Below are positions 32,365 to 63,377 of a DNA stretch of 64,000 nucleotides, in pieces. Made by a program: the position numbers and the translations under genes. The notes beneath the pieces were generated by a model. That model had not been told where the DNA came from. It did no database searches and saw only the letters and a list, made by a program, of their open reading frames with translations. Each line of letters starts with the position of its first letter. Position 1 is the stretch's first letter. The stretch is from the NCBI RefSeq assembly GCF_030028105.1, contig NC_092374.1:178398057-178462056 (forward strand), in the 5' to 3' direction. This DNA is from Mobula birostris (Eukaryota).

Positions 32365-34393
32365 AACCTCCCCCCCACCTGTCCTTCTGAATTTCATTCA
32401 GTACAAGTCAATAGAGATCAAGCACTCCTCATATATTAAGGAGAGAAGGAAGAATATGACAGATGAGGAAGAAAAGGCAAGAACAGGTGGTCAGAATTAG
32501 TTTTGAACCCAAGTAATGTAATCATTGAGTGCAGAGGAAGGTCTAATCTGAGACTGTGGTGTGGTCAAAGGGAGGGTGGTAGTGTGATATCCTCAGATAC
32601 GCGGAGAGTACTACACTGTCAGTGGGGCCATGCACTGTGGAGGGGCAGGTAGAAGTTGTGGGGTACTGAAGGAGAAGCATTGCACAGTCAGTGGAGCAGA
32701 CATCATCTCATCGGGGAGAGGTGCTTTGTTATCTCTGAGGAATTCAATGAAGAAATGGCACTCGATCAGCAATCAGTTGCAACGCATTGACAGGGTGTAA
32801 TTCAGAGGAACACTATTGTGTTTCTCAAAATTAGAAAAGTAAGTTCAGTATATACAGTACTACAAGTACCACATTAAATGAGGAGAGTAGGGAACAGCCC
32901 CTTCAAACAGGTAAAGAGAGGCTGCATCCTCATACACAACACATACTTGTGATACATGGTTGCTTTCAGCCCACGGAAGTGACAAGCAGCTGGGAAACTT
33001 ATTACAGAGCTCTCTGTGTCAACATTGGAATATTGCTTTGGTTCCTCACTGGGGATGGAAAACATCATGGTCTTTGGGCTCTTGTTAGAGGTGGAAGGTA
33101 GTGCTGTTGTTCTAGAGGGAGAGGGTTAGCACAACACAGTGAATTTCTGGACTTGTGCCAGTGAACTGCTTTCTCTTCCTCAAGGAAGAAAAGTAATCAA
33201 GGTGTCTCCCCCCCCCCCCCCCGCAACCGCCGCAAAAAAAAAAAGGAAATTTCATATTGTACTGTCTTCACATATATTTTCTTGCAGCACAGGGTAGTCG
33301 AGGCCTCTGGGTGAGGACATTCAGGACATGGTTCTGCACCTAATTTTGTGCAACAACAAAGACTCCAGAGTTAGGGGTATGGAAGGAAACGGACAGTTGA
33401 CATATCAAGTCAAAATCCTTCATCTGGATTTGATCCAAAATGTTTAATCTCCATTTCCTTCCACAGATGCTGCTTAACACTATGAGCTCCCCAAGGAGTT
33501 TGGGTGTGGGTCCAGTTTGCAGCATCTGCAGCCTCTTCTGTCCTCCCAGGTAGGGATCTGTTGTCTGAGATGCAGAGTTACATTTGCTGTGAACTACCCA
33601 CTGCACCCCAGTCCAACTCCAGCTGAGTAATGTTACACAGATTCTGCCTATTCCACAGAATAGATGAGGAGGAAGAATAGTTCTTAGTGTGTGCATGAGG
33701 AATTCAGAGCAAGTGATAGACAAGTGTGATTGGATGGCCATGGGGCTGTGAAACCTGTGGAGGAATAGAGTTTAGAGTGTTTTGGAAGGCCTGGAATTTA
33801 GCAGCAGGAGTTTTGTGTTTGGACGAACAGCAGGGACTTAGATGTTAAAAGGAAAATCCCGAAACAAAGAAACACAGAACAGTGCACTGGGAAACAGACT
33901 GTCCTTGTTATTCCTCAGGCTGGCGCTACCATGACTGAGAAGGGACAGCAATCAAAACACCGCATGAACCTATTTACTACCCTGATCTTCTAACCTGGCC
34001 TTTAAGCTACTTCCACTAATGGTCTATTTCCCCATAATCATTTTCCAGTTTAGTCACATCATTGAGGACCATAGGGCAATCTCCAATTTTGTCATGATTC
34101 CCAGAGATTCCTTCTTAAGGTTTTATTTCCCCTCCAACCCCGCTGATTATTTTTGATCTCGACCTTTTACTTTAGACTATTTTGCTAATATATTTTCTAT
34201 CTTCTGCATCCTGGACCCTTACAGCTTTTCATATCTCCCTTTAGTGTCCTCTGCTCCTAAGAAGTAACTGCAACTGCTCAATTGTCCTCAAAAACAAAAG
34301 TACCCAGACTTTGCAGATCTCCCCTACACCCTCTCTTGTGCTATATCATCTTTGTAGTTCACGTAACATTTGCCAACTGTACTTGTTGGGCAG

Positions 34394-34506
34394 GACTCGG
34401 TGTGCTCCATGGAGCAGGTCCCATACTGTGGTTCATAGCTATGTTTGCAATAATTATTGGAGTGATGTAGAGGAGCAGCTTAGAGATAGCTAAGGCATTA
34501 CTACAG
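34394..34506 (+). CDS. Orphan terminal (GPI-signal-like) exon of a paralogous MHC class I-like gene; coding 34394-34470
   Basis: cag acceptor, gt donor, 113 nt, the same length as 63265-63377; encodes GLGVLHGAGPILWFIAMFAIIIGVM*; 50/77 nt identical to the paralog, ungapped; downstream intron 34507-34589 and 3' sequence to about 35115 also align. Confidence 0.7.
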
Positions 34507-39779: not shown

Positions 39780-41000
39780 ATAGTGTAGTCGACAGGGTAT
39801 GTGGGAGAGAAGGGATGCATGAAGGAACGTGGGAGAGCGTACGGGGTGGGGAAGGGTTGGGGAAAGCGTGCGGGGTTAGAGAGCGCTTGGGCGGGACGGG
39901 AGCGCGTGCACGAATAAAGAACGCGCACGTAGGAAAAGGACAGGGTGGGGTGTAAGCAAGTGAGGAAGTGGGGGTTGGGAGAGGGATAGGTGCAGCTTGG
40001 GGAGCAATGAGTTTGCAAGGAAGTCCGCACTGGCGTCTGGCAGTGTATTGTACAGAAGTGTAATCCTAGTTGTCCAGGAGCGAGGGCGCAAGAGACGAGA
40101 TCCGGAGAATCGAGTGCATAGAGACACGTGAATAAGCAGTCGCTAGAATTTAGAGCAGAAACCAAAATTCTGGGGGATCTCGTGTGGAGGGAAGTGGTCA
40201 GTTGACGTTTTGGAATCTTATCTCTACTCTCAGCCCTTCACATAGCCGGCTACCTGCCCTTTACCCTTCCAGTCTAGATGAAGTACTTTGACCCAAAACG
40301 TCGTCTGTGCATTTCCCTTCATAGATGCTGCCTGACCCGTTGAGTTCTTGCATCAGTTTTGTTTTCCAGCAGGGATTCCCAGCCTGGGGTCCATGGCCCC
40401 CTTGCTTAATTATATTGGTCGATGGAATTAAAAAAGATTGGGAACCCCTGTTGTATACAGCGACTGGAGACGGTTTGTGGTGATCATCTCCCGGGAGGGT
40501 CCTGGAAACCTGCCCAGAGATGTGTCAGTGACTGGGTGTTGCTGCCTGCGCCTCTCTGTCGCGGTCTGCATGTGCCCACATCCTTACTGGAAGTGGTTCG
40601 GCTCCGCATCCTCCACTGCACATCCTGTGCCTGGCCGGCTGTCTACCGGCCCGCCTCCCTCCCTCCCTCCCTCCCCCGCTCCCCCCCTCCCCCTCCTCCC
40701 CACTCCAGAGCAGCGGCGGGCTGGTTATTTCTGCAGGAAGATTTTTAGTTACAGGAGTTCTTACTGGCTGCTCCTTGTAGCAGGCACTATTTATCCCCGA
40801 ACTGCCTCCGTGAATCTTATCTGCGCCCGCAGCAGTTTATTGACCAACGAGTAGATTTGTCGAGGTGAGGAGACACCGCAATGGAGAGTTGGAACGGACT
40901 GGGATCTCTCCTTTTCACCATATTGTCTCTCTGCTGTGTTGCGGGAAGCCAGGCAGGTAAGGCGAGGGTGTGTGATGGTTTTAAAGGTCTGGAGCTGCGC
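39780..41000. promoter_or_regulatory. CpG-rich island / probable promoter region
   Basis: Locally retained CpGs in a CpG-depleted background, GC-box-like polypyrimidine tract 40650-40700, candidate donors at 40865 (+) and about 40590 (-). Confidence 0.5.
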
Positions 41001-54514: not shown

Positions 54515-54763
54515 TCTCCCACAGCTTGACATATTTCTACCTCCATTCGATAAACATTCCTGAGCTGCCATACATCTCCATGGTTGGGATGTTGGATGAC
54601 CTGCAGATATGCTACTATGACAGCACCATCCAGAGGGTAGAAGCCAAGCGACAGTGGATCATGGACGGCTTTTCAGCTAACGACTGGAAAAACCAGAAAG
54701 AGATCCCGGACGCAATTAAAAAGTTACTTCCTCCTAATCTGACTCCATTCGCCTCGATGCTTG
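54515..54763 (+). CDS. MHC class I-like heavy chain, alpha1 exon (phase 1-1, 249 nt)
   Basis: Polypyrimidine tract + cag acceptor, G|gtacgt donor; (V)SHSLTYFY..P..VGMLDDLQICYYDS..R.W..DW matches the class I alpha1 pattern. Confidence 0.9.
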
Positions 54764-56741
54764 GTACGTGTCTTTTGATTTCCGCTGTTCTTCGAGGCTC
54801 ACAGTGACTTGCACACTGAAAACACGTTGACCTTTCAATGGACCAAAGTAGGTTGTATCAGTTTTAAAATTCCTATCCTTGGTTTCAAATCTTTCAAGGG
54901 TTATATGCCTTCCCGACATCCTCTAACACATATTTACCTTCAATTAAAAGCATTCCATCTGTATCCCACATTTGCAAGAGAAATTTTGCCCTTCAAAAAA
55001 AACTGAGAATCTATTTCTGAGAACCCAGTGCTCATTCCACACCGATCTCCTCCGAGAAATAATGAGAATCAGACCCACTGCCTCTCTGGCTTCGCACGGG
55101 TCAAGCAAACATAAGTTAATATAAAGTAAAATTCAAATATATTACGTGTAATTTGCATGTGTACAAAAACATAATGATACTTATGCAAATTGGGAGAAAA
55201 ATCATGAGAAGTAATGTTGGGGTTTTTCAGCTTGGTTCAAGAACCTGATGGCAGTGGAGGGAAAGGTGCTAAACCTTGAGGTGTGGGTTTTCTGGCTACT
55301 GTAACTCATGCTTGATGGCAGCATGGGGAAGAGGACACGGCCCTGATGGTGGTTGTCCCTGCTGAAGAATGTCACCTTCACTGGTAAATGTCCTCCATCG
55401 GAGAGAGTTTCAATACTAGGACGTGATTTCTATAAATTTGTCAGAGTTTTCAATGACATGCTGAATCTCCTTAGACTTCTAAGCAAAGATGTTGGTGTGC
55501 TACCTTCTCCACACACTGATATGCAGTACACAGTCCTTCATCATGACCCCTGCATTATATCATGCAATGATATACACTCTGTACAGATCACCCCCTCCAC
55601 CAACAATATTCCACTGTGCCACACTCTCATGCTCACGTTCATTACTGATCCTGTCATGTGTACCACACACTGCATGCAGAACACTGTGATCCCATGCTCT
55701 TTGCCATTGCTTTGTGTGCTTCATGGTAAATTGCTAAATTGATTTGTTATTGTCGTATCTGCTAAGGTCCAGTGAAAAACTTCGTTTTGCACACCATCTG
55801 TACATGTCATTTCGTTAACACAGTACATTGAGGTGCAAGAGGAAGCAATAACAGAATGGAGAATGAATTGTTACAGTCATAGAGAAAGTGCAATGAAAGC
55901 AGACCATAAGGTGTAAAACCATAATATGGGTGTTTGTGAGGTCAGGATTTCATATTATTGTACCAGGGGATTATACATAGACTGATAACAGCAGGATAAA
56001 AGCTGCCCTTGACCCCGGTGATATATGTTTTCAGGCTTTTGTATCTTCTGCTCTATGGGATGGGGAAGAAGAGAGAATGTCATCGAACACAGAAGAGCGC
56101 AACAGTGTTGTGCTGAACCGGCTAAAAAGCTAATCAAAAACACCCAAACACTAATCTGTCCTACCTACACCACATCCATATACATCCATCCTCCTTATAT
56201 CAATGTACCTATCCAAATGTCTCTTAAAGTCCTTTAATGTATTTGCCTCTACCACTGTACTAGGCATCCATGACTCTGAGTAAAGAAAAGACTTACCCCT
56301 CAGATCCGTCTTGAACCAACACCTCTCACCTTCTATGCATGTCCTCTGGTGTTAGACATTTCAACCCTGGGAAACGGATGCTCTCTAATCATGTCTCTGT
56401 TTAACCTCTATCAGAAGGTTGTCTTATCTTTTCATCCCCGTCCTTCTTTCTAACCAGGAACATACTTTTCCTGTACTCTAGAAATTGATATTTAAACACA
56501 CTCCACATGTCTATTGTAGATTTGCCAGAGAAAAAGTGTTCTCAATTAACGCTTCTTAGTACCTGCCTAATGCCCTTATAATTTGCCCCACCCCAATTTA
56601 AAGCTGGTGGATGGATGGGGTCTTTGATTTTGTTGTCTGATTTACTGAAGCAGCGAGAAATGTAGATAGAATGTGCGGAGGGGGGCGCTGTGTGTGCTGA
56701 TCTGTGTCCATAACTTTCTGCAGTTTCTTGTGATCATGAGC

Positions 56742-56946
56742 CAACCGGTGGCCTAGTGGCATCAGCACTGAACTTCTGAGCGAAGGCTCCCGAGTTCGAA
56801 TCCAGCCGTCTCCCTTGCACGCTTTCCATTCATGCTGGGTTGAGCGTCGAGCTAGCAACTCGGCCTCTTTAAAAATAAGAAAGCCGGCTAAAAAAACACC
56901 ATCATGACGGCGTCCCAGTGACTCCACTCGGGCTTTCTTCTTCTTC
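56742..56946 (+). mobile_element. tRNA-derived SINE with a (TTC)n tail and 17-bp TSD, in the alpha1-alpha2 intron
   Basis: A box tggcctagtgg 56749-56759, B box gagttcgaatcc 56792-56803; TSD ttcttgtgatcatgagc at 56725-56741 and 56947-56963. Confidence 0.9.
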
Positions 56947-57169
56947 TTCTTGTGATCATGAGCAGACCTGATGCCATACCAAGCTGTGATGCCTATATTG
57001 TACATCAATAAGCATGACTGAGGGTCAAAGGGGACATGTCATATACTTCACCCTACTGAGACAGTGCACATGGTATTTACATGTTTAGCAAGACATTATG
57101 CAGGTGGGAATGGTTGAAGAATTCGAATATTCAGCCACTAACACAGATTAACCTGTTGGTCCTTTCCAG

Positions 57170-57439
57170 GCATCAGATACATCCAGGGGCTTCTGGGCTG
57201 CACGCAGTCTGCAAATACATTCAAAACCTTCCTCAAGATTGGCTGCCAAGATTTAGGAGAGCTCATTTGTGACTTCACTACCGGGAAGTGTATTACCACT
57301 GGTGTCCTGATGTTGGTCAATGATTATCTTCAGCAAGTTAATATTGCTGATATTCCTGAAATTTATATGCTGAACAGTAGCTGCATCCAGTATTTGAAGA
57401 AAGGTCTTCGGCTTGGCAGAGAGGAGCTTGAAAGGCAAG
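57170..57439 (+). CDS. MHC class I-like heavy chain, alpha2 exon (phase 1-1, 270 nt; not in the ORF track)
   Basis: cctttccag acceptor; open frame GIRYIQGLLGCTQSANTFKTFLKIGCQDLGELICDFTTGKCITTGVLMLVNDYLQQVNIADIPEIYMLNSSCIQYLKKGLRLGREELERQ with Q96, G100-C101, C164 and a class I end motif; G|gcaagt GC donor. Confidence 0.88.
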
Positions 57440-58224
57440 GCAAGTGGAACATCTGATTACATACTGTAAGCTCTGTGAGGGAACTCCTGCTTCAGACAAT
57501 TGATGGACTCCTGATCTGAGATGTTCAGGGGTGTCTTGACACAAATGGATGGGATCAGCCTGATTCTGAGTTTGTGAGAGAGTTTTTGATTCAGCACAAT
57601 GAGGGGACTCACAATCGAAGTGACATGACCAAATTTGGTGAGCAGTGTTCTGGTCTAAGAAGATGAGAGAGGTCCCAATCTGCGACACTGGGGGATCTCC
57701 CAATTCTGAATGGTGAGCAATGTCCTTATCTGGGGTGAAGGGTACCTCAACTGAAGGTGACTAATGATGTCCAAGTCAAGGATTGTGTTGGAACTTCTAT
57801 TTAGACACAGTAACAGATCTCCCAATCCAGGACATTGAGGGCATCTCTTGATCAGGAATTTTGAAGGATCTCCCAATTAAGGCTGGTAAACTAAACTTAA
57901 TTTGGGGTGATTATGGCATGATCAATCTTGGAATATGAGGTAATATTGACTTGGGACTATGGGTGACATAAAGATTGGTAACGGTGGCTGTAACCTTGAT
58001 CTAGGCCTGTCAGATGAATGAAAATTACTGCTGGCTATGGTCTGCATGGACTTGAGCTGAGGAGATGATTTCGGGCAGGATAGTGATTAATGGTGAGGTA
58101 GGTCCTGGTCTGAGGCAGTAAAGAGTAAGAATCCCACTCTTGGACACTGTAACTTCCATTTGTAATGGTAAGATAATATAAGTTTGTGTTGACTTAGTGA
58201 CGTTAATTCTTCATTCTTCCCTAG

Positions 58225-58500
58225 TTGCTCCAGAGGTTCAGGTGTTGAAAAAGAGGCCAACAGCTACTGAGGGCGAGAGTCTGTCATGCATCATCACTCC
58301 CTTCTACCCCCGTGCTATCAACGCCACTTGGCTGAAGAATGGACAGGTTGTCTCCAAGGGCTACGAGGTGACCGTGCTACCAAACTACAATGATACATAC
58401 TGGATGGAACTAGTCATTGAGCTGCAGGATAATGATACGAATATCTATACCTGTCATGTCAAGCACAGCAGCCTGCCGGGGGCACTGATGGTGCAGGGAG
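58225..58500 (+). CDS. MHC class I-like heavy chain, alpha3 (Ig-C1) exon (phase 1-1, 276 nt)
   Basis: ttccctag acceptor, G|gtaggt donor; VAPEV..LSCIITPFYPRAINATWLKNG..TVLPNYNDTY..YTCHVKHSSL Ig-C1 motifs. Confidence 0.93.
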
Positions 58501-59178: not shown

Positions 59179-60767
59179 ACTGAAGGAAGAGTGAGAAAGG
59201 GATTTGAAAGTTGGAGGGGGAGGGGGAGATCCAAAATGATAGGAGAAGACAGGAGGGGGAGGGATAGAGCCAAGAGCTGGACAGGTGATTGGCAAAAGGG
59301 ATACGAGAGGATCATGGGACAGGAGGTCCGGGAAGAAAGACAAGGAGGGCGGGGGGACCCAGAGGATGGGCAAGGGGTATATTCAGAGGGACAGAGGGAG
59401 AAAAAGGAGAGTGAGAGAAAGAATGTGTGTATAAAAATAAGTAACAGATGGGTTACGAGGGGGAGGTGGGGCATTAGCGGAAGTTAGAGAAGTCGACGTT
59501 CATGCCATCAGGTTGGAAGCTACCCAGACGGAATATAGAATGAAAAGCCTCATCCTGAGAGCAGATGCGGTGGAGACGGAGGAATTGCGAGAAGGGGATG
59601 GCATTTTTGCAAGAGACAGGGTGAGAAGAGGAATAGTCCAGATAGCTGCGAGAGTATTGCCTTCCCGCAATTCCTCCGTCTCTGCCGCATCTGCTCTCAG
59701 GATGAGGCTTTTCATTCTATGACGAGGGAGATGTCTTCCTTTTTTAAAGAAAGAGGCTTCCCTTCCTCTACTATCAACTCTGCTCTTAAACGCATCTCCC
59801 CCATTTCACGTACATCTGCTCTCACTCCATCCTCCCGCCACCCCACTAGGAATAGGGTTCCCCTGGTCCTCACCTACCACCCCACCAGCCTCCGGGTCCA
59901 ACATATTATTCTCCGTAACCTCTGCCACCTCCAACGGGATCCCACCACTAAGCACATCTTTCCCTCCCCGCCTCTCTCTGCATTCCGCAGGGATCGCTCC
60001 CTACGCAACTCCCTTGTTCATTCGTCCCCCCCCATCCCTCCCCACTGATCTCCCTCCTGGCAGTTATCCGTGTAAGCGGAACAAGTGCTACACATGCCCT
60101 TACACTTCCTCCCTTACCACAATTCAGGGTCCCAAACAGTCCTTCCAGGTGAGGCAACACTTCACCTGTGAGTCGGCTGGGGTGATATACTGCGTCTGGT
60201 GCTCCCGATGTGGCCTTCTATATATTGGTGAGACCCGACGCAGACTGGGAGACCGCTTTGCTGAACACCTACGCTCTGTCCGCCAGAGAAAGCAGGATCT
60301 CCCAGTGGCCACACATTTTAATTCCACATCCCATTCCCATTCTGACATGTCTATCCACGGCTTCCTCTACTGTAAAGATGAAGCCACACTCAGGTTGGAG
60401 GAACAACACCTTACATTCCATCTGGGTAGCCTCCAACCTGATGGCCTGAACATCGACTTCTCTAACTTCCGCTAAGGCCCCACCTCCCCCTCGTACCCTG
60501 TCTGTTACTTATTTTTATGCACACATTCTTTCTCTCACTCTCCTTTTTCTCCCCCTGTCCATCTGAATATACCTCTTGCCCATCCTCTGGGTCCCCCCCC
60601 CCTTGTCTTTCTCCCCAGACCTCCTGTCCCATGATCCTCTCATATCCCTTTTGTCAATCACCTGTCCAGCTCTTGGCTCCATCCCTCCCCCTCCTGTCTT
60701 CTCCTATCATTTTGGATCTCCCCCTCCCCCTCCAACTTTCAAATCCCTTACTCACTTTTCCTTCAGT

Positions 60768-63264: not shown

Positions 63265-63377
63265 GAGCCGGGGAGCCTCGTGGTGCAGGTCCTTTGCTGG
63301 GGCTGATGGTGACACTTACGATGATGATTAAAGTGGTGTAGAGGAGCAGCAAGGAGAGAGTCAAGACTTTAGTGCAG
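63265..63377 (+). CDS. MHC class I-like terminal coding exon (hydrophobic tail, stop at 63339-63341) followed by a 3' UTR intron
   Basis: tag acceptor in phase 1, in frame with alpha3; encodes GAGEPRGAGPLLGLMVTLTMMIKVV*; donor gtgggt at 63378, acceptor ttttgcag at 63462; structure conserved in the paralog at 34394. Confidence 0.68.

Follow-up and report, generated by a model that had tools for sequence, protein, structure and literature searches.

Our findings identify the gene in this window, by which we mean the whole 64,000-nucleotide stretch of DNA that was analysed, as an intact, transcribed Mobula copy of UFA, an elasmobranch nonclassical MHC class I lineage, and it adds a new member to a family that is already known and crystallised. 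The feature that first drew attention to the gene was the abundance of cysteines in its alpha2 domain, for which we favor, with a probability of roughly three in four, an account in which a UFA protein carries the universal C101-C164 disulfide of class I, a hairpin disulfide that is family-wide, and two lineage-specific cysteines that are left unpaired. The gene is encoded on the forward strand, and its exons, together with one GC splice donor, are laid out as follows (a slash marks the end of the exon).

40881..40956, + strand: candidate leader (signal peptide) exon, located by tblastn against P0005 residues 1-25 at 84% identity
54515..54763, + strand: alpha1 exon, 82 full codons (54517-54762); best PDB match 8gm8_A, E 1.7e-14
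57170..57439, + strand: alpha2 exon, 89 full codons (57172-57438); best PDB match 8gm8_A, E 4.6e-8
57440..57441, + strand: GC splice donor of the alpha2-alpha3 intron, caag/gcaagt
58225..58500, + strand: alpha3 exon, Ig C1-set; Pfam C1-set E 7.1e-16, PDB match 8gm8_A E 3e-23
63265..63341, + strand: tail exon for a short hydrophobic C-terminus, located by tblastn against P0005 residues 291-315 at 96% identity

Together the five exons, the leader being the candidate among them, make one open frame of 315 residues, which is the length of P0005. The leader candidate opens with an ATG at 40881 and is followed by a donor (g/gtaagg) after 40956, and its phase fits the alpha1 exon. The alpha2 exon is of phase 1, with an AG acceptor before 57170 and a frame that runs from 57172 without a stop, while in alpha3 both canonical cysteines of the Ig disulfide are intact (codons at 58287 and 58452). 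The tail exon ends in ...MMIKVV and passes directly into a TAG, so that a cytoplasmic tail is absent, and this layout of a short hydrophobic C-terminus is the same throughout our UFA alignment (A1).

Evidence of transcription was provided by Logan contigs from three runs of one organism (X1, X2 and X3). Spliced contigs from each run join 54763 to 57170 across a GT..AG intron with 0 differences from the window throughout alpha1 and alpha2; those of X1 and X2 run on through the joint 57439>58225 into alpha3, up to 58403, and the X3 contig spans the same joint, its alpha3 piece not being among those listed. The joint, given as 57437>58223 with 2 ambiguous letters, is the same as 57439>58225 and was found in three runs, and separate contigs of X1-X3 over 58408-58500/58501 again have 0 differences from the window. 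As the runs were only guessed to be RNA, it is the removal of both introns in the contigs that demonstrates a spliced product; and because these contigs match the window with 0 differences, the five cysteine codons of alpha2 are present in processed RNA and do not reflect a slip in the assembly. The presence of the joint 57439>58225 in spliced contigs also means that the second intron (57440-58224) has a GC donor. This GC-AG intron, whose donor (sequence above) is a strong consensus, is borne out by the transcripts themselves.

Comparison of its domains by sequence and structure points to UFA. For all three domains the top PDB match was 8gm8_A, at the E-values given above, and a Foldseek search with the model of P0005 likewise ranked 8gm8 first (E 1.7e-26); this entry, released on 2024-11-27, bears the title 'Crystal structure of shark nonclassical MHC class I, UFA'. 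When the alpha2 exon was searched with HMMER against 1.8 billion representative proteins, only four matches were returned, three of them UFA-type and one a weak teleost match, and word-indexed searches seeded with the HMMER matches yielded 19 ray proteins and 25 shark or ray proteins, P0005 and the nurse-shark sequence of 8GM8 (P0030) being among those recovered. The alpha1 domain alone scores 25 bits against Pfam MHC_I, below the 28.3-bit cutoff, and the alpha2 exon by itself draws no MHC_I match, giving only a spurious sub-threshold HTH match. We attribute this missing match to divergence, and it is no argument against class I. The alpha1-alpha2 platform of the AlphaFold model fits the class I fold, and Foldseek returned at least 500 class I matches in the PDB at E<=0.001. 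In a maximum-likelihood tree of 27 UFA-like proteins, built without the UAA, UDA and UGA outgroups, sharks and batoids form separate clades (support 100/100), and the window gene falls with P0005 and the Hemitrygon akajei protein P0001 in a group that we call clade A (support 100/100).

The nearest annotated protein is P0005 of Mobula birostris, which is 98%, 92% and 97% identical in alpha1, alpha2 and alpha3, differing from the window at 1/82, 7/89 and 3/91 residues, respectively. Judged from these sequences, P0005 could stand in any of three relations to the window gene: its ortholog in a sister species, one of its alleles, or a paralog of very recent origin. The differences are concentrated in the final 25 residues of alpha2 (57360-57438 against P0005 172-198), in the helix around the C164 equivalent, and polymorphism, gene conversion or selection acting on that helix could account for this.

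UFA has been described in sharks and rays as a class Ib lineage that is linked to the MHC, resembles CD1 and binds lipids; this description, lipid binding in a hydrophobic groove included, is based in both accounts on unpublished data (PMC10751288, PMC12562908). Shark UFA is further described as single- or low-copy (PMC12562908). Rays have many UFA copies, which have expanded into clades with different cysteine complements. No primary UFA structure paper was found among the full texts that were searched.

The cysteine codons that bear on the alpha2 domain are listed below, with residues numbered within the 89-codon alpha2 exon and, in brackets, in P0005.

57199..57201, + strand: TGC, exon Cys10 (P0005 C119), the C101 equivalent; found in 29/29 UFA proteins and aligned to the class I cysteine
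57244..57246, + strand: TGC, exon Cys25 (P0005 C134), the Tyr118 equivalent at the end of floor strand S2; clade-specific
57268..57270, + strand: TGT, exon Cys33 (P0005 C142), the Leu126 equivalent and first half of a C-x6-C motif; placed by family alignment, model and register
57289..57291, + strand: TGT, exon Cys40 (P0005 C149), the Trp133 equivalent and second half of C-x6-C; Trp stands in this column in Heptranchias P0029
57382..57384, + strand: TGC, exon Cys71, the C164 equivalent, with an N-S-S sequon just before it; placed by frame, family alignment and register
54610..54612, + strand: TGC, the single cysteine codon of the alpha1 exon (P0005 C58), equivalent to class I position 34 (Val34); Mobula-specific

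An earlier note on this DNA had called all six of these codons, and the reading frame and the spliced contigs confirm each of them. Its description of the domain as a class I alpha2 that has three cysteines in addition to C101-C164 is likewise borne out, by the register with classical class I and by the family alignment. We located the peptide GCQDLGELICDFTTGKC in the alpha2 frame, and the proposal that in this segment, GCQDLGELICDFTTGKC, a cysteine takes the place of the conserved Trp133 holds in the profile alignment and is reinforced by the Heptranchias tryptophan.

The register on which these equivalences depend is provided by a profile-profile alignment of 29 UFA proteins against a classical-type class I protein (P0003), which has a probability of 99.7% and is gapless through the segment. 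It places C149 on Trp133 (the W of ...NTYTW...), C142 on Leu126, C134 on Tyr118 (the Y of GYDG) and C58 on position 34. The equivalence of exon Cys40 to Trp133 thus follows from the profile alignment together with the tryptophan that Heptranchias has in the same column; in a weak match to chicken CD1 the second hairpin cysteine likewise falls on a tryptophan. An AlphaFold2 model of P0005, computed with the 29-protein alignment and of moderate confidence (mean pLDDT 76.6, pTM 0.67), places the strands of alpha2 at 112-122, 125-134, 138-143 and 148-151, with all three extra alpha2 cysteines on predicted floor strands. C142 sits on one arm of the S3-S4 hairpin and C149 on the other, with a 4-residue turn (144-147) between the arms, and the model would therefore make them direct cross-strand neighbors. 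C134 is the last residue of S2 and in the model sits opposite approximately residue 138 across the S2-S3 turn, while C142 sits opposite approximately residue 130. As the facing of the strands differs by about four residues, C134 does not appear to be positioned to bond C142. The alpha1 cysteine, C58, is modeled on alpha1 strand S3 (55-61), four strands away from S2 of alpha2. We take class I position 34 to line the groove at its B-pocket end, and we place position 118 beyond the F-pocket end. Being four strands apart and at opposite ends of the groove, C58 and C134 would be unable to pair.

The most informative of the extra cysteines are the two of the C-x6-C motif, C142 and C149. We tabulated the cysteines of 29 aligned shark and ray UFA proteins, 28 of which cover this segment, and found both cysteines in 22 of the 28, the nurse-shark 8GM8 chain (P0030) included. 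The carriers comprise lamniform, carcharhiniform, orectolobiform, heterodontiform and pristiophoriform sharks as well as skates, an electric ray, sawfish, stingrays and mobulids. Both cysteines are absent from four proteins of a stingray subclade (P0015, P0016, P0017 and P0019) and from Heptranchias (P0029), and only P0014 keeps one of the two. Fisher's test on their co-occurrence gives p 6e-5, a value that is uncorrected for phylogeny and has only two independent loss lineages behind it. On the maximum-likelihood tree, the stingray loss began with a 4-residue deletion that took C149, after which C142 was changed in one case to N and in another to L; that C142 was replaced twice once C149 had been deleted is the behavior expected of a cysteine without its partner. 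Heptranchias perlo is the sole shark whose UFA is without C-x6-C, and has Tyr and Trp in the paired columns, the Trp standing in the classical Trp133 column. Each of these is one base from a cysteine codon, so this state is perhaps a reversion rather than ancestral. The C101 equivalent is invariant (29/29), and the C164 equivalent is missing only from two stingray proteins (P0017 and P0019) and from the fragment P0018 with its truncated alpha2.

Conservation, joint loss and predicted strand pairing together make a cross-strand disulfide between C142 and C149 probable. In this respect the hairpin disulfide proposed in the earlier note stands, though not as something new, given that the pair is already present in 8GM8 and in most of the family. 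C-x6-C is a hallmark of UFA, one that is derived here from the family alignment and not from a published definition, and it is no novelty of this gene; it was probably already present in the ancestor that sharks and rays share. The same tabulation gives a mixed answer on whether the extra cysteines are conserved: the hairpin pair is, at 22/28, whereas Cys25 is limited to one clade of Mobula and Hemitrygon, and the alpha1 cysteine to Mobula. As an observation on the stingray subclade, which comprises P0014-P0017 and P0019 of Hemitrygon akajei and Hypanus sabinus, the hairpin pair was lost by way of the 4-residue deletion, and as P0017 and P0019 are also without the C164 equivalent, their alpha2 floor and helix must be differently built or degenerate.

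How these cysteines may act together can be proposed as follows. Exon Cys10 and Cys71 would form the universal C101-C164 disulfide, tying floor strand S1 to the alpha2 helix. Cys33 and Cys40, at the Leu126 and Trp133 positions on the strands of the S3-S4 hairpin, would most likely form a cross-strand disulfide, a compact covalent staple in place of the bulky packing of Trp133 and Leu126. Such a staple might hold the outer floor edge rigid and at the same time leave more room beneath the alpha2 helix, and this room could in turn allow a deeper hydrophobic groove, which would fit the groove reported for UFA. Clade A would then have one free floor thiol, and Mobula two, at opposite ends of the groove and too distant to bond to each other.

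The two lineage-specific cysteines appear to be of a different nature from the hairpin pair. Position 134 is Cys only in P0005, P0001, the fragment P0018 and the window, with I, V, L, F or T in the remaining UFA proteins. C134 shares its face of S2 with I132 and L130, and the nearly invariant K131 is on the opposite face. Cys25 therefore resembles a conservative exchange at a buried aliphatic floor position rather than a bonding site, and the topology suggests that it is probably a free buried thiol. At position 58, every UFA protein from outside Mobula has D, E, Q, N or Y, and Cys is confined to Mobula: most rays have Asp, sharks have Glu or Gln, and the Hemitrygon members of clade A have Tyr. 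A codon path from GAY through TAY to TGY fits a succession of Asp, Tyr and Cys at this position, and the alpha1 cysteine is, like Cys25, recent and, from the topology, probably unpaired.

The earlier note had suggested that the cysteines left over from the hairpin, here Cys25 and the alpha1 cysteine, might form an alpha1-alpha2 bond or an inter-chain bond, with a homodimer or with a partner, and so remodel the groove. We regard this as very unlikely. The Mobula protein does have an even count of non-canonical cysteines (the alpha1 cysteine, Cys25, Cys33 and Cys40), Cys25 is kept between the Mobula and Hemitrygon clade-A proteins, and free cysteines are known to drive dimers of some class I molecules, as in HLA-G (Cys42) and HLA-B27 (Cys67). 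However, the Hemitrygon clade-A protein has C134 together with Tyr at position 58, which argues against a pair between C134 and the alpha1 cysteine, as Cys25 existed without that partner; and the strand S3 of alpha1 and the end of S2 in alpha2 are four strands apart. We reject the intramolecular pair on this combination of topology and the Hemitrygon protein. The inter-chain form is unsupported, as Cys25 stands in place of buried aliphatics, which speaks against the surface exposure that dimerisation would require. A different connectivity in clade A, in which Cys25 bonds Cys33 or Cys40 and leaves the third cysteine free, would give a redox-switchable or isomeric floor, and is suggested by the presence of three non-canonical cysteines within 16 residues on neighboring strands. 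We judge it highly improbable, given that Cys33 and Cys40 co-vary as a conserved pair in proteins that are without Cys25, and that in the model C134 faces approximately residue 138 while C142 faces approximately residue 130, about four residues further down the strand.

It is scarcely credible that the excess of cysteines is simply the noise of decay in a degenerating, non-functional class I copy. Multi-copy ray UFA does include broken or degenerate members, such as P0018, which is without most of alpha2, and P0017 and P0019, which are without the C164 equivalent. Against this, the window gene retains an open frame over five exons whose 315 residues match the length of P0005, properly spliced transcripts occur in three runs, the canonical cysteines of alpha2 and alpha3 are intact, and a Hemitrygon protein of 85% identity retains the same alpha2 cysteine pattern. 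We reject a pseudogene on the open frame and the spliced transcripts. The reading of universal, family-wide and lineage-specific, probably unpaired cysteines in an intact UFA gene remains the one we prefer.

Comparison with the closest known systems helps to place the gene. The nurse shark UFA in 8GM8 (P0030), at approximately 40% identity to the ray protein, has the same four alpha2 cysteines (the equivalents of C101, C-x6-C and C164) at the same spacing, but has Val and Glu where the ray gene has Cys at the Tyr118 equivalent and at alpha1 position 34. Its crystallised chain is an ectodomain that terminates with alpha3; full-length shark UFA proteins such as P0004 have in common with the ray gene a tail-less hydrophobic C-terminus. 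P0005 (M. birostris, annotated 'MR1-like') and P0001 (Hemitrygon akajei, annotated 'CD1d-like') share all five alpha2 cysteines with the window; P0005 has the alpha1 cysteine as well, whereas P0001 has Tyr there. Classical class I of the HLA-A2 type has the same fold, the C101-C164 bond and alpha1, alpha2 and alpha3 exons with phase-1 junctions, and relative to it the ray gene has exchanged Trp133 and Leu126 for a cysteine pair and Tyr118 for a cysteine, and is without a cytoplasmic tail.

The relationship to CD1 is of another kind. UFA is reported to be functionally analogous to CD1, with a lipid-binding groove, again citing unpublished data (PMC10751288, PMC12562908), but in sequence the two are not significantly related, the best CD1 match to alpha2 being chicken CD1 at E 1.1. 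In the column of the second hairpin cysteine of UFA, chicken CD1 retains Trp, and in Foldseek classical and MR1 chains rank above CD1. A second CD1-like class Ib lineage of elasmobranchs, shark UGA (9CH4, released 2026-03-18), is the second-best PDB match to alpha1 (E 2.4e-8) and a structural match in Foldseek (E 1.3e-18), while its alpha2 has no detectable similarity to the alpha2 exon at E up to 10.

Our findings are in large part deflationary with respect to this one gene, as a crystal structure that contains the hairpin pair has already been deposited, and the cysteines particular to this gene have the look of ordinary substitutions. Their wider interest lies in the family. UFA has been put forward as evidence that lipid presentation of the CD1 type is as old as the jawed vertebrates, and a conserved, probable second disulfide in place of Trp133 offers a simple lineage marker for UFA; the replacement of Trp133 also suggests a route by which the alpha2 floor may have been reshaped for a deeper groove. 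As clade A gains floor cysteines and the stingray subclade loses the hairpin pair, the UFA copies of rays probably differ in groove architecture. The family-wide pair, its two joint losses, the ray clades with differing cysteine sets and the floor cysteines of clade A all seem to be undescribed in the literature that we searched. It is a long shot, though one that we mention, that clade-A UFA uses its reactive floor thiol at the Tyr118 position, joined in Mobula by a second at position 34, to capture ligands covalently or to gate their loading by redox state. MR1 captures ligand through a Schiff base on Lys43, and thiol capture, if true, would be a cysteine-based counterpart of this chemistry.

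Some further observations concern individual copies and the surroundings of the gene. P0018, a 198-residue Mobula hypostoma protein annotated 'CD1c-like', resembles clade A, but its alpha2 ends right after the extra cysteine (...KIGC) and Tyr replaces the first Ig cysteine; either the copy is broken or its gene model is wrongly annotated. Within the window, the leader-like exon sits 13.6 kb upstream of alpha1, and a further 6 kb upstream of it an orphan UFA-like tail exon lies at 34393-34467, which is either a relic or a piece of an adjacent paralog. Apart from this orphan, tblastn found no other class I exons (alpha1 to alpha3) in the window. The alpha1-alpha2 intron contains a high-copy repeat at 56092-56937, over which the summed contig depth of each of the four runs is in the thousands and variants and loose contig ends are numerous. 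It has no matching Rfam family, the Rfam search of the flanking introns having returned no match, and is probably a SINE-like element. Finally, the intron between alpha3 and the tail exon holds an open frame at 59719-60048 that resembles a retroelement protein.
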